Shown here in pieces: positions 1 to 52,153 of a stretch of DNA of 64,000 nucleotides. The notes below the pieces were generated by a model. That model did no database searches and had not been told where the DNA came from. It worked only from the letters and a program-made list of their open reading frames with translations. The position numbers and the translations under genes are program-made. Within the stretch, counting starts at the first letter, position 1. Each line of letters begins with the position of its first letter. The DNA is from Chlorokybus atmophyticus (Eukaryota; Plantae; Mesostigma and Chlorokybus algae), in assembly GCA_009103225.1 (NCBI GenBank), contig RHPI01002069.1, positions 124,001-188,000 of the forward strand, read 5' to 3'.

Positions 1-3000
1 ATCATCGCCAGCATCGACAATTGGGATTTCAAGTCTCCAGGACAGCTGCGATATAATGGAGGCGCAGACAAGGACCTGCATTGCACTACCACACAAGTGT
101 GCATACCCTTGCCGATGCAGCGAGAGACTTTAATGGAACAGCCTGTGCCTGCGTTGCGTGCACGCACCTGTGCTCAAGCCCAGATGGAGGCGCCTAAATC
201 GCAGGACATGGCAGTCTCACCGCTTGCTCGGCGACCGTTCGTGTACCCTCCATTGTCCGACAACATCACAGAGCTGCAGGCTCATCAGCGAGAGGCGAAG
301 GATGCCTTCCATCTGGTCATGCACAACACTGTTGTAAAAAGAACGGAGATCCCAGGATACGACAGCAATTCGCTGAAAAACGTCCTCGCCAACTTGTGCC
401 CAACAGAAGACAAGCCTGCAGGCCGGGTGCACTATCTACCTCTATTGCCATACAACCCGGACAAACCAGACCATATGAAGCTGGCCTTGCTTGAGTTGAA
501 GCAGCGCCTTGGACTTGATGCAACCAAGCACAAGGTTTGCGTAGTGGGCGATCAGAAAACCTTCAGCCTCATGATACACTTGAAAAACACTGAACCTGGG
601 TACTGGGACTGGGTACTCCCGATGCCAGGCGACTGGCATGCCCTGTATAATCTCATTCCAGTCATCTTCAAGGTGTATTGGGATGCTGGCTTGGACTCAC
701 TATGCATTGCGGCCGGAATACCTGCCAGTACTGCACGAAACATGATTGCGGAAGGAAGCAACTGGAAGAGAATGCACGCCTACCTAGTGCAGAGTTGGGA
801 AGCAATCTATCGGTACCAGCTTCAATGCTTTCACGCGGCATGCCCCACCGTGTGGAGCGACGCTGAGCAGAGCGTCGAAGATATGCACATGCGTGACGAC
901 AGGCACTACACAGCGTTCTTGGAGTATGGACAGCGTCGTTCAGCAACTGACGCCACATGGGCCATGTGGTGGAATTACACCACACGCGATGCAGCAGCGT
1001 ACCTGGGCTTGTATTTTGCAATTCGCAGCAGCAACTGGCGACTACGTGTGGCGGCGTACAAGGCGCTGAGTCCACTGGCTTTTGCGTGGGATCGCCCCCA
1101 CTACCAGCGCCTGATTACACAACACCTGCACGACATCCTCACCTGGCCAGAAGACGTTCTCGAACACCTCCACGCTGGGGCGTTTTGCATCAGCCTGACA
1201 GGCAAGCCGTGCTGTAGTGTTGCAGGAGACGAAGCGCATGAGACTCTTATCAACAAAGATCTCAAGTCCACTCTGTGCAAACCAAATGCCGACTATGTTC
1301 AACGCAAAACCATGTACTTACCATATAGAGCGTTGGTGATCAAGAGAGTCATGCACTTGCTGAGACCGCTGTCCTCGGCACCCAACGCTGACAACACACC
1401 CCCGTTGGCGGTCGCCAGCGACAAGACAGGTTGCAATGTCAGAGCAATGCTCAGCATTTTAAAGCAGGCAGATGTGCTGGCTGATGACCATGGAGAACAG
1501 CTGGTGCACTTGGTCAACCTCCGTGAAGCAAGCCCTGCCGCAGCTGCAGATCTAGCTCGCCATTATGAAGTGGGCATGGACCAATTCCTGCTATACGCAA
1601 AGGTGACGCACTGCAAAGAGATGACAGCAACGAACGTGGGCCGACGGTTTGGCCTCAAAACCATGCTGTTGCGCAAGCAAGTCATCAGGGCAACACGGGT
1701 ACTGGAGCGCATGCGCAAGACCAAGACCTTGATACTCAATCAGCTGTGCAAAAGCCAAGCAACACAAGAGGCCTATCAGGCTCAGTACCAGGAGATCCCG
1801 CTTGCCCTCTTCAACGAAGATGGGAGCATGCGCAAGGGTGACAAAGCGTTGTTCTTAACGGAGCTTTGTGCGTCATGTGAGGGCGTCCAGCTGCTGCGAC
1901 ATCCTCCAGGAGTGGAGGTGGTAATAGCCGAAGGCATGTTCATGATCAACAAAACACCAGGCAGCGGCGTAAACAACATGCGGGACTACCTAGAGCAGAC
2001 ACTTCGCAGCTGCATTCTCCCCCGCTTGTCCAACCCCACCGTCAAGGAGCTGCATGTAATCTTCGACGATCCATCGCATGCAACGGGCATCAAGTCCAGT
2101 TTGCAACAGTACAGAGACGGTGGGTCAGCGGCACGGACTGTCCAACATCTCACCCTCAACACTGAGATTCCACGTTCATGGCGGGATCTCCTTGCCGACC
2201 GCAGCCTCAAGCGCAGCCTGTGTTCTTTGATGACCCAGTACCTCCCTGCAATGGTTGCCAAGCACCTCAGCCCGGGGCAAACCTTCCTGATAGCGGGCGG
2301 CAGCGACGACCCGCAGTGGAAGGACATTGCGAGGCTTGTATCACACACTGGTGAAGAGGTCGTCATGGGCACCACCGACCTGTATTCCTGCAACCATGCC
2401 GAGTCAGATTCGCGTGTGTGGCTGCATGCGCAGCGCTGCGCTCACGACAACGTCCTCATTTACTCACCGGACACCGACGTGTCAATTATCGGGCTTGCAG
2501 CGCTGGAGCAGTGGGGATCCACAAGCAAGCAAGTGCACATTCAAGTGGCCACCAGTGCCAACCACAGCAGCCGACCACCGTTCATCGATCTCTCCAGGTT
2601 GCTCAGTCACCTTGACAAGCTACCCCAACTGCGCTTCCTACCGTCACGCCAGCGCGCGCTGTTCATTCTTATCTTCTTTGCGGGGACTGGGTGCGACTAT
2701 ACTAGCTTCTTTGCGGGAATCTCTAAGAAGTTCTTCTGGTCTGCAGCGCTGACTCGTGAATGCGAGTTCATCACCCGTGTGGAGACTCTAGATGAGAACA
2801 CCGCGGCCACCATGCTGCTCAGGTTAGTCGGCTGCGCTTATTACAGCAAGCACAAAAACGTTTTTCCTGGACACAACAGTGGGGAGAGTCTGTTTATTGA
2901 TGCCAATGGCGGCCCTGCTGGCAAGGACGACCCAACACGGCTGTTCATATGGCTGCGCGCAATCCACGCTGGCATTTGGGACAAAACGGCGGTATGCAAG

Positions 3001-3531
3001 GATGACATACCAGCACCATCCGCACTGACTTTGCATACCCGGCGAGTGATGTGGGTCGTCCGCATGTGGTCTCAGATGTGCATGTCCACCGTGACACAGC
3101 CGCCGTTAGAGGAGTATGGCTACACCCTTGAAGAAGGCCAGTACAAAGCGACTGTCGACACCGAAGAGAACATACTCGCCACCAGAGCACGTGCTCAGCA
3201 GCTGCTGCAGGGTTGCAAGTGCAAAACAAGTCAGTGTCGAACGAGGCAATGCAAGTGCCGCAAGAACGGCAGTATGTGTGGCCCAGGCTGTAGCTGCACT
3301 GGATGTTTGAACCTACCCAATTGCCCCGCACCAACGCAAGACACACAGCAGCCTGCCAACGATCACGATGAAGAAGATGTGGATGACGACGACAGTGATT
3401 GTGACGACTACAACAACCAGGGCAGTGACAATGCACAAGAGGACCCCGACAGCGACAGCGACGATGAGGAGCTTGACTTTAGCCTGCATGCCTGGCTTGA
3501 GAGCGTGGACGAGGCTGACATACGGTGGTAG
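1..3531 (+). CDS. AcademX-like DNA transposase (Academ transposase domain + XPG/PIN-like nuclease + C-terminal Cys8/CXC finger), 5'-truncated by the window edge
   Basis: Frame 1 is open from base 1 to TAG at 3529-3531 (1176 codons, no stops). Transposase-like motifs: SIDNWDF (at the very start), VVGDQK, PGDWH, GDEAHETLINKD. XPG/PIN-like motifs: VIAEGMF, VIFDDP, HAESDSR, SPDTDV, GCDYTSFFAGISKK. C-terminal CKCKTSQCRTRQCKCRKNGSMCGPGCSCTGC followed by an acidic tail. This tripartite layout is the described AcademX architecture. Confidence 0.8.
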   Translation: MIASIDNWDFKSPGQLRYNGGADKDLHCTTTQVCIPLPMQRETLMEQPVPALRARTCAQAQMEAPKSQDMAVSPLARRPFVYPPLSDNITELQAHQREAKDAFHLVMHNTVVKRTEIPGYDSNSLKNVLANLCPTEDKPAGRVHYLPLLPYNPDKPDHMKLALLELKQRLGLDATKHKVCVVGDQKTFSLMIHLKNTEPGYWDWVLPMPGDWHALYNLIPVIFKVYWDAGLDSLCIAAGIPASTARNMIAEGSNWKRMHAYLVQSWEAIYRYQLQCFHAACPTVWSDAEQSVEDMHMRDDRHYTAFLEYGQRRSATDATWAMWWNYTTRDAAAYLGLYFAIRSSNWRLRVAAYKALSPLAFAWDRPHYQRLITQHLHDILTWPEDVLEHLHAGAFCISLTGKPCCSVAGDEAHETLINKDLKSTLCKPNADYVQRKTMYLPYRALVIKRVMHLLRPLSSAPNADNTPPLAVASDKTGCNVRAMLSILKQADVLADDHGEQLVHLVNLREASPAAAADLARHYEVGMDQFLLYAKVTHCKEMTATNVGRRFGLKTMLLRKQVIRATRVLERMRKTKTLILNQLCKSQATQEAYQAQYQEIPLALFNEDGSMRKGDKALFLTELCASCEGVQLLRHPPGVEVVIAEGMFMINKTPGSGVNNMRDYLEQTLRSCILPRLSNPTVKELHVIFDDPSHATGIKSSLQQYRDGGSAARTVQHLTLNTEIPRSWRDLLADRSLKRSLCSLMTQYLPAMVAKHLSPGQTFLIAGGSDDPQWKDIARLVSHTGEEVVMGTTDLYSCNHAESDSRVWLHAQRCAHDNVLIYSPDTDVSIIGLAALEQWGSTSKQVHIQVATSANHSSRPPFIDLSRLLSHLDKLPQLRFLPSRQRALFILIFFAGTGCDYTSFFAGISKKFFWSAALTRECEFITRVETLDENTAATMLLRLVGCAYYSKHKNVFPGHNSGESLFIDANGGPAGKDDPTRLFIWLRAIHAGIWDKTAVCKDDIPAPSALTLHTRRVMWVVRMWSQMCMSTVTQPPLEEYGYTLEEGQYKATVDTEENILATRARAQQLLQGCKCKTSQCRTRQCKCRKNGSMCGPGCSCTGCLNLPNCPAPTQDTQQPANDHDEEDVDDDDSDCDDYNNQGSDNAQEDPDSDSDDEELDFSLHAWLESVDEADIRW

Positions 3532-3640
3532 GGCTTCGCATCAGGGTTCTCCCCTCTAATTGCAGCCGCCTAGCAACTTGACAAACACCCTTGCCGCCAC
3601 TGCCAGCCTGCAACAAGGATCACGCTTAATGGTGCGTCAA

Positions 3641-3669
3641 TTTAGGGTTTGGCTCGTGATGTTAGGGTT
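3641..3669 (-). promoter_or_regulatory. Telo-box-like motifs upstream of the MTase gene
   Basis: TTTAGGGTTT at 3641-3650 (reverse complement AAACCCTAAA) and TTAGGGTT at about 3662, roughly 100 bp before ATG 3754. Confidence 0.4.
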
Positions 3670-3753
3670 ATCAATTTGGCTCAGCGGGCGGTGCTGCTGC
3701 GGCTTGATCGCACCTGGATGCTGTAAATACTGTGCCAGGATAGCAGCAAGAGA

Positions 3754-5530
3754 ATGACGCCTGCTCGTTCTAGACCCGCTTTACTCTGCCAGGTATGCAG
3801 GGCATACACAGTCAACAACGGCCAGCGGGCTCGACTCAAGCGCCATCAGACGCACTGTGGGCAGTACAAGGCGGTGTTTGGCTACACCGCCGCCTGCTGG
3901 CATCATCATGCCGCCGGGGAGTCTGTGATCCGTTGCAGAGGCCAACTCCACTGCACAGCGCCAGAGTTCTTCCACCTGCAGTGCACATGCCGTCAGTGCA
4001 ACTCATCACTTTTCGAGTGGCACGGCACACCCATGCGGTACATGCCATACACGCGGCCAGGAGACAGCGCACACGGCAAGACGATCACCCATGTGCCGGT
4101 CAGTGCGCTGGTAACCCTTATGCATACACGCCTGCACATATGGTCTGCTGCATCCATCTGCAGGTCAATAACAGCACGCCCCATGCACTGCAGTCAACGC
4201 TGCCACGCTGCGGGCGCGGCGCAACGCACCTGGCCAGTGCAGCGGATGGCGTACAAGATAGCAGCACAACAATCGAGGAGGTGAGCCTGCGCTGCCAATT
4301 GCTAGGCCTTCATTCATGGTATACACCAGCATGCGCGCTAACCACACGCAACTGGTGCTTGCAGATGGCACAGCATGCAATCGTTGCAGAGTGTCGCAAA
4401 AGATGCACAGCTCAAGGTGCTGACCTGGTGGGGAGCTCCGTGAGAGTGTTTTGGCCTGCGGACAAGAAGTGGTATGAGGGCTCCATATACCGATGGAACT
4501 CGCATAAAGGTAAGTTAGGCGACTGCTACATAAACGAGGATGTTAATGACTTAGTCGACTTTGCTTGACCTCTTGGTTGGCAGCTCGCTACAGCGTGCGC
4601 TTCCACGACGGCGATGTTCAACACCTTAAGATCGAACGACACAACATCGTGGTTTGCTTCAGACATAATGGAATTATGTCATGTATCCAAATCGGAGGTC
4701 AGAGAGTACCGGTGAGTCAAAAGGCTGCTCTCCCGCTGCCATGTATCCCAATGTGGAGTGTGTCATCACCTCTGCTCATGACCCACACCGCTCGGAGACC
4801 GGACGGCACACCACACCGACCCAAGTTATTGGACCTTTGCTGTGGGGGAGGCGGTGCCAGCATGGGGCTTTACAGGGCAGGGTTTGACATTACTGGCGTA
4901 GACAACATCATGCAGCCGGAGTACCCCTTCAACTTTATCAAAGGCGATGCACTGACTGTGGACCTGGAAGCCTACGACGTCATATGGGCAAGCCCACCAT
5001 GTCAGGCATTTGCAGGATGCATCCCAGAAGGGCAACGGCAACAGCATGGGGGCAACTGGAACCATAGCCAACTGCTGCACACATTGCGCATCCGCCTACA
5101 TCAATGCAGCAAGCCCTACATCATTGAGAACATACCAGGAGCTGCACTCCACATGACGGCCTCGCTCACTCTGTGCGGCACCATGTTTCGACTGTCGACT
5201 TTTAGACACAGGCTGTTTGAGACAAGTCCCCAGCTAGAGGTGGACCTGGTTTGCGACCACACCGAGAAGAGTCTGGGCACCTTGTCTGGACACTCCACCT
5301 ACATGCAAAGTCAGCCCCATCAGTCGCAACATGCTCAGATGTACCCTGTGTATGGGCAGGCTGTTTCACGTGGCACCATAACTGGGTGGAAGAAGGCTCT
5401 CGGCATCGAATGGATCCAAGCTGAAAGCACACTCGTGGAATGTATCCCGCCGGCCTATGCTGAGTACATAGGACGTAAAATGCTGCAGACAATGGGCTAC
5501 ACAGTTAGTGCTCCATTGTCATGGGAATAG
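3754..5530 (+). CDS. Zn-finger/PHD-like + Tudor + C5-cytosine DNA methyltransferase fusion (about 521 aa, 4 predicted exons)
   Basis: Predicted exons 3754-4110, 4164-4280, 4365-4509, 4584-5530, joined in frame by GT-AG introns. Tudor-like segment: LVGSSVRVFWPADKKWYEGSIYRWNSHK|ARYSVRFHDGDVQHL. MTase motif I LLDLCCGGGGASMG, IV ASPPCQAF, VI YIIENIPG, VIII RHRLFE, X ECIPPAYAEYIG. The Tudor-MTase join (phase-1 intron 4510-4583) is well supported; the join to the N-terminal fingers via a 53-nt intron is less certain. Confidence 0.8.
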
Positions 5531-6896
5531 CCAATATGCGACCCACATTCAGGGCACAACGTTGCAAGTTGACACAACAGGCTGCTGACACTGCACAGTG
5601 TGCGTGCACCGCATGTTCTCCAGAAACGTTCCAATGTACTGCAGGACCATGCTAAGACACAGTGCACAACCTAAATGACTTCACGAAGAAAACATCAGGA
5701 CCTACTAATCAGCAGACATGAGTACGAATGCACCTACACAACAATACATGAAAAACTACACAGTGCATACACAATCACATCATGCACGCAGCAACTACAA
5801 CATCATGCTCGCAGCAGCTACAACAAACACCAACCTCTTGCATCCAAGTATCACACAGCACGCGACACACATCACACACACACACACACACACACATGCT
5901 CACCGAAAACGGCTATGCAAAACTCCTCAACACATGTCGCAGTCGCCTTAACCACCTGGCCGATAGAGCCGACCGGGCAGCAGACAGGCGGCCCCACCCC
6001 AGACAGCCCGGCGTCAACGACCTATACCGCTACACACCACCCGCACAACTAGCCCGCACACACAGCGACGCCACCTGGCCGCCGCCGCCGCCGCCGCCAC
6101 GTCAACAGGCGAAAAATGGCGCCGGCGGGAAACCTCTACCACAAATCCTATTCCCACGCAGCTAGGCACTCTGTCAACATCGACACGCATTGGCAACTCC
6201 AGCGACGTCACATTGTGTCACCATCGACACAAGTCGACCCATCCGCCTCTGTCTGCATCGACAAACGGCGAACAATCCATGTCAGTCGTTGGCGACACTG
6301 TGCAGCCTTACACTGACATTGCTGAGTTAACGATTGCCCCATGGCAACCCCTCGGGCTCCCAGACTGACCATGACCATGCCGTCGGCATTGTGCTACGGT
6401 AGCAGGGTCCTGGCCTTGGGCATGGGTCCGTTCACTGAACGGCGTTCAGGCAAAGGTCCTCTCAAAAGCGAATGGGACCTGAGTGGAGTGACCCTGTCGC
6501 TTTTGGGGTCGCTTTCCTAGGGTAAGTGGCCCTAACGTTGGACAATTGGGTCAACTAAAGACCCTCAAAGGGCCGGCCCAATGGTAAGTAGTGCAAACGT
6601 TATGGCGGAAATGGAGCTATTTCTCTGCTGCCGCCTTCGACCAAACTTTGCCGATTTGCCCGTGTCCAACTTGAGGCAAAGTCGTTTTTTGGGCGATCTA
6701 CACTTCACCCTGTGAGAGGGTGATGTGGACGCATCCGTTAACCGATTGACTAGCCAAACAGTGCGTTGGATAGCCAATCTCGTTAGCTTTCCAACAAGCC
6801 TACCCAACGACTCAAACGGGCCAGCGACGGGCCCGTACTGGCTATTCTTAATTCTTTAGGTGTCCGAGAGATATGGTCGGATCACCCTACAGGGTA

Positions 6897-9800
6897 GGGT
6901 CAAGTCCCCTAATTTGGGAACGGCCCCTTATTTGGGGATTAGCCGTTTTTAGCTGATATCTACCGGCCTGTGGGGTATTTACCGGCCATATTATAGGTTT
7001 AGGCAGGTATGATTGATACGCGTCCAACGAGCCTTTAACATTGGCAAACGGATCAGCGGGGCGGGAGTTTTGAATTTTCAAAGTTGGTAAATTTTGTGGT
7101 TCAAACGGTGTAGTAACACCATGAAGTTTGCAACTTAATAACTCTGGCATGTGATATGGATATTGGATGATTTTTTTTTGTTGGGTTTGTATAGGCTATA
7201 GGACCTTATTTCTCAAGTTTCATGCTATTCCACGCGAAAATGCACTAGTTACAAAGTTCACACTTTTGGGGTATAACGCAACGACACAACCCAAAAGTGA
7301 AGTTGGTGACTGTTGCCTTTGTGAGTGTTAGAACTGGTTGGGGCTCCGTGTTTGTGTTTGTATTGCAGTTTGCAATGCCTCAAGCACTCACTAGTTGAGT
7401 GTTGGTGGCATTTCAGTTGTTTGCTAGCTGTAGGCTAAGGTGTGAGGGGGTGAGATAGTGTGAGTGAGGTGTGCTGATGCAGAGGAGACAAGAGCAGTCA
7501 GAGAGTTGTACACGCGTTAGCTGTGTTGCAAAGGAGTTGTATACACTGCTACAAGGTCAGCTAGCCAGCTCAAGTCCTACCCTATGGTACAAAGCAGCAC
7601 GCAAAGGGTGGGTGTGTTGCATTTGTCAGCAACTTTGTCATCACTGTGGCACAAGGCCACTCAGACCACCCTGTTGCATCATGCTGTTGATACTGCAACT
7701 CTCAGGGTAAACGTGTCAAGGCCAAGACACTTCTGGCCAAGAAGAGAAAGAGGAGCCACAACAACTACAGCGCCATGCTGGAGGACATCTAGCGTGCTGT
7801 AGCCTCCATCAACCAGGGCTGTATGCATGTTGCTGATGCTGTCAAGGACCTTGGCATCCCGGACACCACTATGCGTCGCTTCGTTGCACAACCACACACC
7901 ATCCCCGAGTACAAGTGAGTTGAGGCTGTAGGTGCTGCTGTGCTGGTTCAGCAAGTCAAGACAAGTTAGTTAGTGACATGTGTATACAGGTTTGCTGGCG
8001 CTCCCACCATCTTTAGTGATGTTGAGGAGACTGACCTAGCAGAGTTTGTCAAGGCTCGTAATGGGTGGGGTCGTGGCATGACGTGGACAGAGATTGGTAT
8101 AGAAGCAGGCAAGAGGCTAGTAGGAGATGACAGAGCCAAACTGCTAAAGGAAGGGGTACCTGGGAAGAGGTGGTTCGCTGGCTTCAAGCGGAGGAAGCGT
8201 TTGGTCACCAGGAAGGCAGAGCCCCTCGACAAGTCCAGAAGAGTCTTCCTCAACAAACCTGTCGTGTACCACTACTTCCAGCTGCTGGCTGAGACTGTGC
8301 AGCAGCTGCTGGGGGTTGGTCCGGATAGGATCATCTGCGCTGATGAAGTTGGCATCGAACCAGATACGGCCATGCAGAACCAGCGCATCATCTGCGAAAG
8401 GTAAACAAGTTAGTCATGCATTGGTTACACGCACACGCGCACACACACATGCGTTTAAACACAACATTACTAACTTACATGTTTTGCACAGCGGGGCAAA
8501 GTGGGCACAAGCTGCAACTACAGGCAGCAGGGAGCACATCACCCTTATGTGTGCAGTCACCGGAGCTGGTCTCGCTGCCCCTCCCCTTGTCATTGTCAAG
8601 GGCCAACGCCTCACAGTGGATGCCAAGGATTTTGATGTACCTGGAGCAAGATTTGCAGCACAGGAGAACGCATGGATGACAACGGAGATCTTCGAGTTGT
8701 GGATCAGGGAGTTGGTGAAGTGGTATCCCGGAGGAGTTTGTCCTTCCAACCATGCACTGTTAGTGGTGGACGGACATGTGAGCAGATACAACTGCAGCAT
8801 GATCCGCTATGCACAAGACAAGGGCCTCCACATCCTCGTGCTGCCACCCCACACAACACATCGTCTTCAAGTGCTTGATATCAGCTGCTTCCACCCCTTC
8901 AAGGAAGCCTATAGGAAGGAGTATCGCCTGCGCCTGGAGACAAGATACAACTTTGATCTTAGTAGGAAGGAGTTCATGAAGCTGCTGGTGAAGCCTTACT
9001 ACGCTGGGTTGTCCCCTGCAAACATTATCGCGGGCTTCTGGGCATGTGGACTTTGGCCCCTCAACACATATGCACTGGACAAGTACTTCACAGACAAGCA
9101 GCTGGCACCACCACCTCCTGGCCTGTCTGCTCTTTTGGAGGCGATCGACAAGGGCGATGAGGAGGATGACAACAACAACAACAACACAGAGGATTGCAGC
9201 CCCAACACTGAAGCGCCAGCTAAACGAAAGCGTGGCATTAAAACTGCACACTTGCTGACCAGCGACGAAATAGCAGCAGAGATTGAGAGACAGGACCAAG
9301 CCAAGGTTGACAAGGCAGCAGCAGTGCAAGCACGCAAGGAGGCTGCCAAGCAGAAAAAGGAAGAAGCTGTGCATGCAGCAGCAGCAAAGGCAGAGAGGGT
9401 GCAAATAAAGAAGAAACAGGCTGCCTTAAAGAAGATGTTGGCTGAGAGAAAGAAAGCTGCCAAGACTCAAGCCAAGCAGGACGCAGAGAAGGAGAGACAG
9501 CAGGAGCAAGCACAGCAAAGGCAACAAGCACAGCAAGCAGAACAACAGCAGCGAGAGAGAACTGCAAAGGAGGCAACCGAGCTGTGGATGCGCTACGAGT
9601 GGGATCCCATGCAGTGCAACCACCAATTGGGAGACCCCCTGTGGGACTACGCTGAGGGCTTCGCCGAGCGCCATCCCCGCCCAGACCCTGCCCCCCGTGC
9701 ACAGGCCAAGGAGGCGGGCCTCCGCTGGAGACAGCGGCCAAGGGAGCGACACATACACAAGAGACCACCCCGCTAGAGTCCTACACTTAGACAACTTTGT

Positions 9801-10354
9801 AGACCTAATTTGCCTTGACTCACACACCATGTACATACACATGCAGGCATGCAAGACCTTTATGCTCTGCTGTGCGCCTGATGCCACCCATACCCACACC
9901 AATGACGCCGCCGCCCGCTTGCTTGCAACCTTGCAATTGACACAAGGTTTCCCGCCAAGGCGGCGCAGCTTGGCGGGAACAAACCGCCTGCAAGCAATAG
10001 CCTGCACATCACACCCATCACAGCCTGCCCCCCAGCCTACTAGCTGGCTGCCGCCACTTCACAATGGCTGCGGCCAGCAGGTTGATGGCACTCAGGAATG
10101 GCTGACAGCGCCTATCAGCCTTTCTCGAGTCACCAAATTAGGGCACGCGCACCCTTGGGGTCAGACCCTCTGCACCCCCTACTTTGGCGCGGTGTATCTA
10201 ACACGATACCGCGCTAGAAATGTGGAAAAAATAATCATTGTGTAGCCTATAATTCAGCTATCCAGCAACTATACACGTGACCGCCATCAACCCTATCAGT
10301 CAAGCACAATATGCTTAAAACCTCAAATTATCCCCAAAATAGGGGGCTTGACTC
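6897..10354 (+). mobile_element. pogo-family (Tc1/mariner superfamily) DNA transposon with TIRs and TA target-site duplication
   Basis: Left TIR GGGTCAAGTCCCCTAATTTGGGAA (6897-6920) matches the reverse complement of 10331-10354 (GAGTCAAGCCCCCTATTTTGGGGA) at 20/24 positions. TA flanks both ends (6895-6896, 10355-10356). A DDE_1 transposase lies inside. Confidence 0.88.
7706..9776 (+). pseudogene. pogo/Fot-like DD35D transposase (HTH_psq, CENP-B-type HTH, DDE_1) with one premature stop
   Basis: Introns 7915-7989 and 8401-8491 restore the frame. Catalytic motifs ICADEVG, VVDGHVSR and LQVLDISCFHPFK, with 35 residues between the 2nd and 3rd Asp. In-frame TAG at 7790-7792 inside the first HTH (LEDI*RAVASINQG...GIPDTTMRRF). 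Start exon not determined. Confidence 0.8.
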
Positions 10355-10429
10355 TATGCATGCAGTGAGCGAGTCGCTTTCGGGGGGTCCGATGTATGGA
10401 TGAGCTCGACTGCTCAACAAAATGTATTG

Positions 10430-10617
10430 GACATTTGCCCGAATACACCCACCCCCTACAAACAAAGCCCCCCCCCCCCCAAATCAATGAGGTGGGGTGG
10501 GGTGGGGGGTATTAACAGGGTACTCTTTCGCTTGTGAAAGGGGTGGTGGTAAATACAGCCACCCCCGGAACATCCATGGGGGCGTTGTAACAGGGGGGGA
10601 TATTCGGGCAAATACGG
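10430..10617. mobile_element. Short non-autonomous TIR element (MITE) with CCGTA-type termini; left end degraded
   Basis: ATTTGCCCGAATA (10433-10445) is the exact reverse complement of TATTCGGGCAAAT near the right end, which finishes ...AATACGG followed by TA (10618-10619). A related end occurs at 40772. Confidence 0.55.
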
Positions 10618-13090
10618 TAGGTTGCTATTATAGGTGGGAGCCTACTTGCATACATGTCTCACAATACCATTGTGCCACGAAATCTTCGTAAAGGAAATAT
10701 AATTTGGCGAGAGCACTTTACGAAACTCACTTCTCGGCGGCCAGACTTATGCAATGCTGTTAAACTGGTATGCATAGATTGGCGGGGGTTTGACAAAATA
10801 CTGATTTCATATTTTGCGGCGCCTCTCACAAAGATTTTGTGGCATTACGGTATACGTAACACTAAGACTCTTCCCACAAGAAACGGTTGAAGCCTTGTGT
10901 ACAAGCGTGCGTGCACACATAAGGGCTATGCAAGCATGCAAGGCGGTGTCTTGTACACCTTGTGTTATGATGTAACTCTATGACATGAATACGACAAGCC
11001 GTAAGTGGCATACCGCATAAGCGTTGAGACTCGGGGTGATGTATGTGACGCCATCACGTGTGGTCATATGTGCTTATCCAAATTCTCTTTACTATCCCAA
11101 ATTCACACTATTGTTAAATGTCTCATAAGACTCATGAGCACATTGATTATTACATATAAGTAGGACCATTCATGTGAATGGTAATTGATGTGATTTGACT
11201 GTGTAATCAATGGTACACACGCTAATGACACGTACACATCAATTTTGTTCTTTCGTTAATGTTGTAAAACAATAGCCCAGTATATTTGCGAGATCACAAT
11301 TTTGGACATATGACGTCAAAATCGAAACGACCGTTTGCTTGGGTGCAAGTACTGTGCCAATAGTGTTCATTGCAACGTATATAGGTTGCAAGCGATCACG
11401 TACCGGTATATATTCAAAGTGTATTATACTTCAAGAAGTAAGATTAGCAAGAAATGCCTAAATATACGTACCGAAAATTTATGCATATGCATGCATTCAC
11501 CATGAATTGTCAGCACGATGCATTCGTCACCATATTCAAGTTGCTCAATGTAAAAGCACAATTTACAAGATGATTCTGATTTTCGGCTGCAGTTGCCGAG
11601 CCGCGTTATTACTTGATACCCTGTATGTAGCATTTAAATCACTTCTTATATATATGTTGTATATAAGTGTGTTAACAAATTACATATATATGCAAGTTAC
11701 CTTTGATACATAAAGTGTAATTATTGTATAATATAAGTCATGTACATAAACATTATGATTGTACATATATGAGATGGGGCATGTATCCGACATGTGGCTC
11801 CCCATATAGCGGCGACTTTAACTATCATAGCCCATAATGGTTAAGGCGTTGATGTTGTAGTATTATTTGTGCGATTGACATACATAATGCATAATGATAA
11901 CATTACGCTACATACTACCCTTACTGTAAATTATATTACACATAGCAATTACAATCGTGTACATAAAGCGATTAAATAAGTTTGGGTGTCATTGTGCATA
12001 GTACATGACAACTGATGATGTACGCACATTATAAACGTTTTTGCTTACAATTGCTATTAAGCGATTTTGTATTTGTTGGTGTGCACCACAAGCATGCGTT
12101 GCCCACACATACAATAATTATATTGCTAATGAATATATGCACCTCGCGACTCTGCTATTATGAATGAGTTCAAAGTAGTAATCAGTACGACTATTAGCGA
12201 TGTTGAAAATCGTCAGTTAAATAAAAACACTTGAATCTACTCGTGGCATCTGTTGGCTATAGCTGCGATGCTGAACTCGCTTGAATCTGATTGTAACAAC
12301 AAATGGCTTAGACATGTAATGCAATACAAACAATTGATGCGCGACATGCACTGTCATGCGCCCAGCATTAACATAACACTAAATTATTGATTTGTCATCA
12401 ACACTAACACCATACAGCGTCAAGCGTAACGTATGGCATTCAACTCTAATGTGTATGAAAGCCTTTAGGTTGGTGTTTCCAATCGGTAACAAGCCACTAC
12501 TAAAGAAACCCGCGAGGCATGGTAGCAAGCACATCATCAAGACGCAGCAGCAATAGCAGTAGTTAGATACGAATGTAGCGAGTAATTTAATTGGTTTCGT
12601 TTTAACCCATGTTTTTAGAGTTGAGTTACATGGCGAGAAATCAAGCTTAGCGTGCTATCCAAAGTGCATAGCAACAATTGGAGTTTACATTTATTGGGCT
12701 CTGCGCTCTGCAATGAGGTTGATGTAACTTTAAGCAGCTGGGAAAGGCTTCACCTCAGATTCCTCTCGCAAGAAGACGCTGAAGCCAACCATGCTGTAAC
12801 AATGTACAAATAATGCGGACAGCATAGGGTATAACAGAGGGGCCACAAGCAAACAAGCAGACACACAACAACCAAAGCAATATAGACCACCACAAGGCAC
12901 ATACAACTAGCTAGCTATGGGGCTAGACCTATGTGCATGCAAGGCAGGCAGTGAGGCAGGCAGTACGCAGGCAGTAGCAGCTATGATAGCCCTGCCAAAC
13001 TACCTGCACAAGGTAGGAGGCAGGCAAAGGCTTGGGTGAGGCAGTGTGACACTGGACGGCAAGGATGACAAGGACGACGACGAGCATATG

Positions 13091-47779: not shown

Positions 47780-50700
47780 CTACGCTGCCCCGGGAGCCTT
47801 CGTCCCCACCACCCCCTGCTCTCCTCCTAACCTCTCCTCCTCCTTGTTCAGCCCCTGCTTGTCAACCCCCTCCTTATTGCCAGCATTGATATACGCCAGA
47901 TACCCGGGATGTTGACTCGACCCATCCGTCTCCGCTCCCAACTCCCTCTCCTTCTCCTTCTCCTCCTTCCCTTCCTCCACATCCCTACCACCTCCTCCCT
48001 TCTCCCTCTCCTCCCTCTTCTCCTCCTCCACCAGGTCGATGAAGAACGGCTCCCTGAGCCTCTTGGGGATGAAGAACAGGGTGTCGCGGCCCGTGGTTGA
48101 CTCGAAGTAGGTGATGAGGAACAGGATGGAGATGGTGACCAAGGGAGTGAGGAGGGAGTCGAAACCGGTCCAGTCGTTGAGGTCGGGGGCGGAGAAGGAG
48201 GACTTGTCCCAGTCGCAGGGGGCGCCGGGGTAAGCGTGGTCGTAGTCCTGGGAGAGGGGTGGGTGGTGGGTGGGTATGTGGGCGCGCACACGAATGCACT
48301 GATACACACTCACATGCACTGATACATACCAATGGGCTGCATATGGGGTGTGGTGTGAGTGTAGTGCGCATGTGGCTTCTGGCACGCAAACACACATGCA
48401 CGCATCCATACCCCGACACACACACGTCCGTGCACGTGTGCATGGTACTTATATGCACATAGCCACCCATCCCCGTCTCCACAAGGCCCCCCTCACTCAC
48501 CTGCGCATACTTCCCGTACGGCAGCACGTACGACCCATCCTTGGGCAGCGTGAACTGCAGCGTCAACCTCATCACGATCCCCGTCGAGATGGACACGACG
48601 GCCGCGTTGGGCGTGGCTCTCTTCCAGTACACGGCCGCGAACAGCGCCGGCACGCACGTGGCGGTGGTGATGTCAAACGCCACGATCAGGAGACGACCCG
48701 GGTCGTTGTTGAGCACCGCCGCGAGGGCAGCGAAGAAGGTGAAGGGGATGGTGAGGAGACGGGCGGCGGAGAGGAGGTTGGAACGCTTCACGAACTTGAG
48801 CTTCCTGGGGAGGAGGGGGTGGGTGGGTAAGTGGGTGGGGGTGTGCGTGATGCGTGTGTCTGCAGGTAGCACACGCATGCGCGCGTGGCTGCGTTTTGTT
48901 GGTGCGTGTATGTGCGCGGGTGTGCGTGCATGCATGCGTGTGTTGTGAGTGTTGTGCGCTGCTTAGCGCTGATGTACTATGCAAGTGCTACAGCTCGAGG
49001 CAACACCACTACTCTTGGTAAATTAAGTGTATAGCTAAGCCAACCTGCCACACTATCCCACCTGCAGATGTTGTGCGCGAAAACGGTGGCAGTGGCGAGG
49101 ATCGCCCCGTCCGCCGTGGACATACTGGCGGATATGATCGAACACAGCACCCATATCCCCAACCCAGTAGGCGCCTACACAAGAACAGCATTAGGCCTAT
49201 CACAACAACAACAACACCACCCCACCCCACCCCACCCCTCCTCACCTGTTTGGCCATGAGTTTGACTAACGCCTGATCGTCCGGCACCCACTTGGCGCAG
49301 CTGGGCAGGTCCAGCAGCACGCTGCTCGTGTCGGCGTCGAACTCGGCGTAGTGGCTGTCGGGACCGTAGTAGTAGCGGGCGACGCCGCCCAGGAAGGCGA
49401 ACGGGAGGCCGACGGCGATGGACATGAAGCCGGAGATGAGGCAGGCCACACGGGCGACCTGGGAGGGAGAGACGCTAGTTCTGTGTGTGTGTGCGTCAGT
49501 GTGTACGCATACGTACGAGCGCACGCGCGTATACGCGCACGCACACATGTGCGCACGCGCATGTGTGTACACATGAGTGCGTGTGCACGTTTCCGTGCAT
49601 GTGCATGGGTGTGTGCGTGCGTGCATGCGTGCGTGTGGGTGGGTGTTCTTGTCGCAAGTTGTGTGTCTGACTCACTCTAGGGGACTTGGCTGAGAAGCAT
49701 CGTGCTTGGAAGTCCAGGGCGGCGAGGTTGCCGATAGCCAATGTGATGACTGTCGACTGCAGTGACAAGCGGTCATGACATCGGTGATGACAGAGATAGT
49801 ACTTCCACCTATGCGCGCGAACCACGTCGCGCAGTGTCAGTGATGAGAACTCACCCAGTTGAAGAGAATGGCGTTGGGGAAGGGCCCGAGCGCATTGATA
49901 TTGAACATCTCGTTCCAGTATATAGTCTTGTCCCCATCTGCCACACGCACACACACACACACACACACACGATTACTCACCCTCAACCCACAGCCAACCC
50001 AACCCAAACCTCCCCACCCCCCAACAACCACAACATCTTACTCGGGAACGCCCCGTTGTCGTACTGGCTGGGGTCCAGCGCGGCTATCTCCGCCGCGGTG
50101 ACGGTCCCGCACGCCTCGAAGCCCGGGAAACCCACGGACTTGGCCGCGTGGGTCGGGTGCTTGGCAAGCATGTAGATGGCGCCGATCAGGAGACCGGACC
50201 AGGAGAGGAAGGCCTGCGAGAATGGGTGGGTGGGTGGGTGGGTACCATAGCATATGCGTGTATATATTGCGTAGTTACATGTGCGCACTTGCGACAAGCA
50301 AGTACGTAGACATGCCAGCACACACACACACACGCACGCACGCACACAAAGAGAGAGAGAGAGANNNNNNNNNNNNNNNNNNNNNNNNNNNNNNNNNNNN
50401 NNNNNNNNNNNNNNNNNNNNNNNNNNNNNNNNNNNNNNNNNNNNNNNNNNNNNNNNNNNNNNNNNNNNNNNNNNNNNNNNNNNNNNNNNNNNNNNNNNNN
50501 NNNNNNNNNNNNNNNNNNNNNNNNNNNNNNNNNNNNNNNNNNNNNNNNNNNNNNNNNNNNNNNNNNNNNNNNNNNNNNNNNNNNNNNNNNNNNNNNNNNN
50601 NNNNNNNNNNNNNNNNNNNNNNNNNNNNNNNNNNNNNNNNNNNNNNNNNNNNNNNNNNNNNNNNNNNNNNNNNNNNNNNNNNNNNNNNNNNNNNNNNNNN

Positions 50701-52153
50701 NNNNNNNNNNNNNNNNNNNNNNNNNNNNNNNNNNNNNNNNNNNNNNNNNNNNNNNNNNNNNNNNNNNNNNNNNNNNNNNNNNNNNNNNNNNNNNNNNNNN
50801 NNNNNNNNNNNNNNNNNNNNNNNNNNNNNNNNNNNNNNNNNNNNNNNNNNNNNNNNNNNNNNNNNNNNNNNNNNNNNNNNNNNNNNNNNNNNNNNNNNNN
50901 NNNNNNNNNNNNNNNNNNNNNNNNNNNNNNNNNNNNNNNNNNNNNNNNNNNNNNNNNNNNNNNNNNNNNNNNNNNNNNNNNNNNNNNNNNNNNNNNNNNN
51001 NNNNNNNNNNNNNNNNNNNNNNNNNNNNNNNNNNNNNNNNNNNNNNNNNNNNNNNNNNNNNNNNNNNNNNNNNNNNNNNNNNNNNNNNNNNNNNNNNNNN
51101 NNNNNNNNNNNNNNNNNNNNNNNNNNNNNNNNNNNNNNNNNNNNNNNNNNNNNNNNNNNNNNNNNNNNNNNNNNNNNNNNNNNNNNNNNNNNNNNNNNNN
51201 NNNNNNNNNNNNNNNNNNNNNNNNNNNNNNNNNNNNNNNNNNNNNNNNNNNNNNNNNNNNNNNNNNNNNNNNNNNNNNNNNNNNNNNNNNNNNNNNNNNN
51301 NNNNNNNNNNNNNNNNNNNNNNGGGGGTATATGGGTATATGCACGGGAGCGTGCGCGTGCGCGTGCATGTATGTACACTGTTACACACGTGCGTGCGTGT
51401 GTGTGCATCGCAATGTGGGGACCATGTATGTGCCCTTGCGTACCAGGAATAGGCTGAGTCCAAGGCCAATGGGGATGACCGCCCCGTCGAAATACTGATA
51501 TCTGTATGCGTACTGCACCGACCCCAGCGTGGCGTTGCTGTCGAGACTGCTCGACGCCAGCATCATCGTCACGAACAGCAGGTTCATCCTCCTCCCCGCC
51601 ACGAAGAAGTTCTGTTACACGCGTGATGCGTATGTACACGTGTGCAATGCGTTTCGATATGTGAGATGCGATGTGTGAAGCGTGTATTCACCTCTGCTTT
51701 GCCTTTGATCATGATGGTGGACACGACGCCGATGATGAAGAAGGCGACCATGGTGAAGATGACGGGGAGGCCGAATATGAGGGAGAGGTGGTTGCGGGTC
51801 CATTCGGCCGGCGTGGGGATGAGGCACACCTGCTCCTGGCACGCCACACCTGTGTGCGTGCATGCGCACGTGCGTGAGAGCGTGTATGCATGTGCGTATG
51901 CAAGAACACAGTGAGGGACAGTTTGCACTCGCGGGTGCAAGGGCAAAGTGAGTCCAAAGCCTTGCATGGTGAGCAGGCTCAAGAGAGAGGAGTGCTTCTC
52001 CCGGTTCTTGTCAATATTGATCAGGGAACACACATCCATTACGTGCGTAGGTGTGCATGTGCATAAGTATGTGACTGTAGTTTGCATCACTCAATCACCT
52101 TCAGCCACCAGCGTCTCATTGCAGAAGTACGTCCAGTTGCCGGTGTCCGCCAT
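47780..52153 (-). CDS. Sodium:solute symporter (SSS/SLC5 family), interrupted by an assembly gap
   Basis: NFFVAGRRMNLLFVTMMLASSSLDSNATLG, AIGNLAALDFQARCFSAKSP, SIISASMSTADGAILA, ALFAAVYWKRATPNAAVVS; multiple transmembrane segments. Confidence 0.85.
50365..51321. other. Assembly gap (N run) inside the SSS gene; an 18-N gap also at 25910-25927
   Basis: Run of N flanked by a (GA)n tract and a G tract. Confidence 0.98.

Follow-up and report, generated by a model that had tools for sequence, protein, structure and literature searches.

A Probable AcademX-Type DNA Transposon in the Alga Chlorokybus atmophyticus With a Predicted Tudor-Fused Cytosine Methyltransferase Gene as Likely Passenger

Introduction

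Cytosine methylation is usually viewed as a host weapon against transposons. For the Academ/AcademX lineage of DNA transposons, which was reportedly described by Kapitonov and Jurka in 2010 and by Kojima in 2020, we know of no C5 cytosine methyltransferase (MTase) as a passenger gene, and no description of such a passenger was found in the searchable literature. AcademX elements, which belong to the Academ superfamily, have terminal inverted repeats (TIRs); an XPG-type nuclease and a target site duplication (TSD) of 3-4 bp are cited for them in PMC10045372. Here, we describe a locus in a 64,000-nt stretch of the Chlorokybus atmophyticus genome (assembly GCA_009103225.1, contig RHPI01002069.1, positions 124,001 to 188,000 of the forward strand), which is referred to as the window. 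At its left edge, the window contains an Academ-type transposase gene (ORF1), followed on the same strand by a predicted, spliced gene for a compact C5-MTase fused to a Tudor domain. This Tudor-MTase gene is probably a passenger of an AcademX-type cut-and-paste element, so that both genes would be situated between one pair of ends.

Several types of transposable elements (TEs) are known to encode enzymes or reader domains that act on DNA methylation or chromatin. DNA methyltransferases (DNMTs) are found inside retrotransposons of Symbiodinium (SymbioLINE-Dnmt and SymbioDIRS-Dnmt3) and of Klebsormidium (de Mendoza et al., 2018, PMC5890265). In fungi, TET/JBP genes are found on DNA transposons of 11 lineages and are transferred from one lineage to another (Kojima, 2025, PMC12730594); according to the same paper, Harbinger and MuDR elements of Phytophthora carry SET genes. 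DNMT-encoding DNA transposons have also been described in large marine double-stranded DNA viruses (Bao and Jurka, 2013, PMC3627910), to the extent that they are cited in PMC5890265. In addition, fusions of TEs with PHD or chromo reader domains are frequent (bioRxiv 10.1101/2021.11.30.470311). In the literature searched, no account was found of a C5-MTase passenger on a nuclear DNA transposon or of a Tudor domain fused to the compact MTase type described here.

The Transposase Gene

Frame 1 is stop-free over positions 1-3528 of the window and terminates with a stop codon at 3529-3531, while the left edge of the window cuts the frame. Full-length homologs of ORF1 exhibit 550-700 extra residues upstream of the first column of the window, which indicates that the gene is longer and that only its last exon is contained in the window. 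The following features were assigned:

1-3531, plus strand: last, long exon of an Academ-type transposase gene (ORF1), 1176 codons plus stop
298-1860, plus strand: predicted DDE transposase catalytic core with an all-alpha insertion domain (ORF1 residues 100-620), from an AlphaFold model, structure matches and invariant columns
1858-3030, plus strand: predicted XPG/FEN1-like 5' nuclease domain (ORF1 residues 620-1010), from a model and invariant columns
3211-3312, plus strand: Cys-rich CXC ("Cys8") cluster with eight invariant cysteines (ORF1 residues 1071-1104), then an acidic tail to the stop

An exhaustive HMMER search of 1.8e9 representative proteins identified 2882 relatives of ORF1, 159 of them at E<=1e-30 and the best of them with 34% identity. 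In a word-indexed collection, only three matches were of comparable length; these show 27-30% identity and carry PF20231 (DUF6589) and PF03638 (TCR/CXC). PF03638 (TCR) is carried by the ORF1 homolog P0121. Judged from these searches, the ORF1 family appears to be widespread but distant, with no close relative on record. No literature link between PF20231 (DUF6589) and Academ was found.

The predicted transposase core retains the conserved residues D184 (in VVGD), D211 and H213 (in PGDWH) and D410-E411 (in DEAHE), and its first catalytic strands fall at or beyond the edge of the window. An AlphaFold model of residues 100-620 (25 homologs) reached a pLDDT of 75 and a pTM of 0.73. Foldseek alone returned no match for this model, and an exhaustive aligner then gave P element and hAT transposases: in VIA-align, the Drosophila P element transposase scored Z 8.5 over 227 aligned residues and the hAT transposase Hermes Z 5.5, both standing well above unrelated rows. 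In the adjoining nuclease domain, the acidic residues E639, D689, E801/D803, D824/D826 and D899 (in GCDY), which are typical of 5' nucleases, are kept. A model of this domain (pLDDT 69) was matched by Foldseek to the PDB structures of XRN2, FEN1, EXO1 and Rad2 with probabilities of 0.8-1.0 and modest E values (best 8e-4), and the language-model leads for the same region were XPG_I/XPG_N and Pox_G5. Finally, the cysteine cluster matches the CXC domain of LIN54 (5fd3) with an E value of 0.004.

A preliminary description of this DNA had read an uninterrupted 1176-codon ORF with transposase, XPG and Cys8 parts; the open frame and the matches to P element and Hermes transposases, to FEN1-type nucleases and to LIN54 bear this reading out. 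By its predicted domain set of DDE transposase, XPG-type nuclease and cysteine cluster, ORF1 corresponds to the AcademX architecture.

The Methyltransferase Gene

The ORF1 stop codon is followed by a second gene on the same strand, whose ATG is located at 3754 and which was rightly placed 222 bp downstream in the preliminary description. The predicted gene model spans positions 3754-5530 of the plus strand and consists of four exons with 517 stop-free codons. Its introns of 65, 84 and 74 nt all exhibit GT..AG boundaries and have consistent phases (0, 0 and 1). The model was read from the genomic sequence and its exons were searched one by one:

3532-3753, plus strand: spacer between ORF1 and the MTase gene, 222 bp
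3754-4098, plus strand: exon 1, Cys/His-rich N-terminus, 115 codons (open frame, GT donor at 4099)
4164-4280, plus strand: exon 2, linker of 39 codons (AG acceptor at 4162-4163, GT donor at 4281, phase 0)
4365-4509, plus strand: exon 3, first half of a Tudor domain, 48 residues (phmmer match to 7de9)
4584-5530, plus strand: exon 4, second Tudor half (~4584-4660; pattern by eye), a linker and a compact C5-MTase (~4790-5527; MTase profiles)

An intact spliced gene at this position had been proposed before, and the stop-free four-exon GT..AG model, predicted from sequence, fits that proposal. The proposed C5-MTase is likewise recovered, in the last exon. Exon 4 matches the phage DNA methyltransferase family phrog_363 with an E value of 1.1e-24, and the 7908 homologs of the enzyme, most of which belong to PF00145, are mainly phage or bacterial proteins of ~210 residues. 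All catalytic motifs are present, namely DLCCGGGG (I), SPPCQ (IV), ENI (VI) and RHR (VIII), together with a C-terminal IPPAY, and the window protein keeps 29 of the 29 invariant columns of a 15-sequence alignment. With only 13 bits in the NCBIfam dcm model TIGR00675, whose cut-off is 100, the enzyme falls into a compact (short) branch and not among the classical Dcm proteins.

Relatives of the MTase at 34-43% identity are located on phage-sized contigs of IMG/VR and on metagenome contigs of JGI. In a maximum-likelihood tree, the window MTase falls into a clade of 11 members with 99% SH-aLRT support, which includes six sequences with a methyl-CpG-binding domain (MBD) inserted inside the methylase. 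These MBD-bearing compact C5-MTases (P0002, P0003, P0006, P0009, P0011 and P0013) are closest to the catalytic domain, at 46-52% identity, and they have loop and C-terminal signatures in common with the window protein. Both follow a reader-plus-writer logic, although the relatives carry the MBD insert and possess neither a Tudor domain nor introns, whereas the window protein has an N-terminal Tudor domain and predicted introns and does not carry an MBD insert. The contig of P0009 is dense and intronless, with GT_PLOD/2OG oxygenase, aquaporin and Prim-Pol/D5_N primase-helicase genes as neighbors, a context that appears giant-virus-like; P0003 is situated on a similarly dense contig. No closer relatives, with more than ~54% identity, were detected among proteins of 175-556 aa in a collection of 5.8e9 proteins, in IMG/VR or in the JGI metagenomes. 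The position in a clade with MBD-bearing, giant-virus-like relatives points to an enzyme of foreign type which later gained spliceosomal introns and a plant-type reader, and the sequence comparisons suggest a descent of the window MTase from a phage/giant-virus family of "orphan" methylases.

Two observations on these relatives are of interest in their own right. The arrangement of the MBD within the methylase, found at 2874-3716 of locus L084 and at 2028-3050 of locus L001, represents a reader-in-writer design on giant-virus-like contigs, of which no description was found in the literature. Furthermore, P0001 and P0005, with ~450 residues each, consist of the compact methylase duplicated in tandem and contain two complete catalytic modules per protein.

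The reader part of the protein was assessed exon by exon. In a phmmer search, exon 3 matched the 66-residue Tudor entry 7de9 of the PDB with an E value of 2.5e-4 over 31 residues, and the aligned part, the first half of the domain, includes a conserved W-P...Y core. By eye, the Tudor pattern extends into the start of exon 4 (Y-V-F-DGD), a segment too short on its own for a significant match. The entry 7de9 is the Tudor domain of Arabidopsis PDS5C/RDM15, a binder of H3K4me1. In plants, this domain is part of cohesin-associated proteins or of proteins linked to RNA-directed DNA methylation and is not known from a methyltransferase, whereas here it is predicted to be fused to one.

For exon 1, no match was obtained against PDB and NCBIfam, its recognition in the Atlas was low and the leads were limited to generic zinc fingers. 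Its N-terminal Cys/His-rich region is possibly a zinc finger. A PHD finger was considered for this exon and rejected: in addition to the missing PDB and NCBIfam matches and the generic leads, the Cys/His spacing is non-canonical by eye and does not follow the C4HC3 signature. Of the reader domains named in the preliminary description, the Tudor domain is therefore supported through its first half only (E 2.5e-4 to 7de9), and the PHD finger in exon 1 is unsupported.

The spacer between the two genes contains two plant telomere-repeat-like boxes, TTAGGGTT, at 3642 and 3662 (together 3642-3669), which are 20 bp apart and sit 85-110 bp upstream of the ATG of the MTase gene. The sequence TAGGGTTT has only two occurrences in the whole window. 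A TGTAA at 3722 is the sole one within 3400-7000. Based on their sequence, the boxes may constitute a candidate telo-box promoter element and the TGTAA may be a candidate polyadenylation signal. Scanning the spacer for bacterial promoters and terminators, which is irrelevant for a eukaryote, gave nothing.

Paralogs in the Same Organism

The only public run of the organism, X1, is of low coverage. Four of its contigs are identical to the locus (2460-2660, 2874-3056, 3471-3623 and 4409-4815), which shows that the run derives from the same organism, and the word depth is ~2.6-3.9 over both genes. In addition, three diverged contigs were detected, of which two fall on ORF1 and the third on the motif IV region of the MTase. 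When the unaligned ends of these contigs were translated in the frames of the window, the same amino acid was encoded by 13 of 19 flanking codons in the MTase paralog (DALTVD, CIPE.QR.Q), with synonymous changes in 10 of these 13. For the ORF1 paralogs, 14 of 29 codons specify the same amino acid, again with synonymous changes in 10 cases (10/14). The retention of amino acids despite synonymous changes indicates that both genes belong to old multi-copy families under constraint at the protein level.

A single-copy MTase syntenic with host genes in related species had been named beforehand as an outcome that speaks against a passenger gene. The diverged paralog in X1 rules out a single copy; this result concerns copy number and does not by itself demonstrate a linkage of the two genes. 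It can also be read in another way. The Tudor-MTase gene could belong to a host multigene family, or to a domesticated, virus-derived one, that is situated in TE-rich DNA and has become a chance or regional neighbor of the Academ element, whose right end would then be located within 3532-3753. We regard this as fairly unlikely, even though a diverged paralog conserved at the protein level fits selection at the level of the host and even though spliceosomal introns and a plant-type Tudor domain are found here as in a resident nuclear gene. What stands against such neighbors is in part the spacer itself, in which 222 bp would have to accommodate the 3' untranslated region of the transposase gene, a subterminal region with its TIR and the promoter of the MTase gene.

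One Element or Two Neighbors

ORF1 and the MTase gene probably constitute the right-hand two thirds of one AcademX copy, in which the MTase would be a separately spliced passenger. Indirect support for a single element comes from the gene arrangement, as both genes are located on the same strand at a distance of 222 bp and both look intact; if repeated elsewhere, this same-strand spacing would be an unlikely coincidence under the assumption of two unrelated neighbors. Base composition points in the same direction. The observed/expected ratio of CpG is 0.49-0.98, and mostly ~0.75, across positions 1-7000 and 0.36-0.57 in a pogo-like element that follows. The even level over both genes and the downstream stretch and the drop in the pogo-like neighbor indirectly support a single element, and the equal depletion across both genes counts against mere neighbors. 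The start of the pogo-like element only ~1.3 kb past the MTase gene and the old paralogs of both genes in X1 add further indirect support.

If the MTase gene is cargo, the right terminus of the element is expected downstream of it:

5531-6850, no strand assigned: non-coding sequence that follows the MTase gene, expected site of the right terminus if the gene is cargo

The pogo-like element starts at ~6850, about 1.3 kb past the stop codon of the MTase gene, which confines the enclosing right end to 5531-6850, except in the case that an Academ arm contains the pogo-like element as a nested insertion. This stretch contains a 23-nt tandem repeat (5777-5825), a (CA)n tract (5852-5896) and a (GCC)7 tract (6078-6098). 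Moreover, three of the seven copies of the motif ATCGACA in the window are found within 85 bp at 6179-6263; the cluster looks like subterminal repeats, with the limitation that the motif was picked post hoc.

Several results weigh against a single element. Neither a terminus nor a TIR or TSD was found in the window, outside of which the left end is located, and a search of positions 5400-11000 for repeats and inverted repeats that could mark the right terminus yielded only short, chance-level pairs besides the arms of the pogo-like element. The lack of a transposon end that encloses the MTase gene also speaks in favor of two neighboring units. A second copy of either gene was not detected in the window by tblastn and blastn with both genes and positions 1-7000, and the depth of X1 gives no evidence of a recent burst of identical copies. 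No public RNA run covers the locus; the splice joints are predicted from sequence, and expression is presumed. Four distant Academ-like loci of other organisms (L002, L003, L085 and L086) show no MTase within 10 kb, which indicates that the MTase is not a general feature of Academ and which would also be expected if the two genes were mere neighbors. Conversely, 160 loci of MTase relatives in viral and metagenome collections contain no Academ-like ORF, Tudor domain or exon 1 nearby. Within these collections, the combination of Academ and Tudor-MTase appears so far to be specific to this genome.

The age and divergence of the MTase paralogs would also agree with a mobile cassette, i.e., a unit of zinc finger, Tudor domain and MTase that was passed passively among DNA transposon lineages, or with a nested fragment in or near the right arm of the Academ element. 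TET/JBP genes behave in this manner across 11 DNA-transposon lineages (Kojima, 2025, PMC12730594). No foreign TIRs flank positions 3754-5530, however, and we consider such a cassette improbable as a separate explanation; it largely overlaps with a passenger gene of the AcademX-type element, as the MTase gene would still be cargo at this locus.

Surroundings of the Locus

The pogo/DDE_1-like transposon extends over ~6850-10420 and is delimited by imperfect inverted arms at ~6852-6920 and 10333-10420, which differ by an 18-nt indel. It contains two ORFs on the plus strand (7973-8404 and 8316-9776) with a DDE-type motif recognized by eye; a sequence search of these ORFs against the PDB gave no match. 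Directly after it, a MITE-like unit is situated at 10433-10613, whose 29-nt inverted arms are 79% complementary and lie 123 nt apart. The locus had been assigned to a block consisting of TEs only. The presence of the pogo-like element next to the MTase gene agrees with this assignment, which is an overstatement when extended to the window as a whole. Further downstream, an assembly gap (N run) is located at ~50366-51400, with (CA)n and (GA)n tracts before it. This gap accounts for the dip of the GC content to 0.30 and for the artefactual ORFs that overlap one another on both strands at 49983-51639.

Discussion

The domain content of the Tudor-MTase suggests a possible mode of action. In this model, the Tudor domain would dock the enzyme on nucleosomes with a methyl-lysine mark, which is H3K4me1 in the case of the Arabidopsis domain, and the methylase would write 5-methylcytosine (5mC) on nearby DNA in some short sequence context. 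The element would thereby control how its own copies, or the chromatin around it, are methylated. Tudor-guided writing of 5mC for the benefit of the element is deduced here from the domains only, and the functions that can be envisaged, i.e., self-regulation, mimicry of gene-body methylation and the marking of target sites, are speculation. A more far-reaching scenario would involve an autonomous Academ copy that is still functional and an expressed Tudor-methylase that binds a histone mark, e.g., H3K4me1, and writes 5mC; the two domains would represent a mobile, chromatin-guided reader-writer module which originated from a giant virus and was exchanged among several DNA-transposon superfamilies of a streptophyte alga. 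This scenario in its entirety is unlikely.

If the passenger gene is real, gene flow from giant viruses, transposons and chromatin readers of plant type would come together at this locus, in a relative of land plants that branched off early. If the more far-reaching scenario holds, DNA transposons would be able to install their own methylation program on host chromatin. As both genes look intact, this copy is well suited to tests of activity, binding and expression.

Among the known systems, AcademX elements resemble the window element in one long protein with DDE transposase and XPG-type nuclease domains and a cysteine cluster at its C-terminus. The window element, which was named from this domain architecture, differs by the probable addition of a C5-MTase gene and by its host, an alga of the green lineage. 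The elements of Symbiodinium and Klebsormidium resemble it as TEs with a C5 cytosine methyltransferase of their own, and one of their hosts is a charophyte alga. They are, however, retrotransposons whose DNMT is located within the ORFs of the element and is of the eukaryotic Dnmt3 or a related type, whereas the window element is a cut-and-paste DNA transposon by its predicted domains, with a separate gene, predicted to be spliced, for a compact methylase of phage/giant-virus type fused to a Tudor domain.

The fungal TET/JBP transposons offer a parallel in that a DNA transposon carries a separate gene for an enzyme that modifies DNA methylation. In contrast to the alga, where the predicted enzyme is a writer with a histone reader, these fungal elements carry an eraser or oxidizer of 5mC. 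In the DNMT transposons of marine viruses, a DNA transposon is likewise found together with a prokaryotic- or viral-type cytosine methyltransferase. They reside in viral genomes, belong to the IS607/TnpB type and possess neither a reader domain nor introns, while the window element is nuclear, of Academ type, predicted to be spliced and fused to a Tudor domain. Transposons that carry epigenetic enzymes are thus already known, and a 5mC writer of viral origin, guided by a histone reader, on a cut-and-paste DNA transposon would be a new combination.

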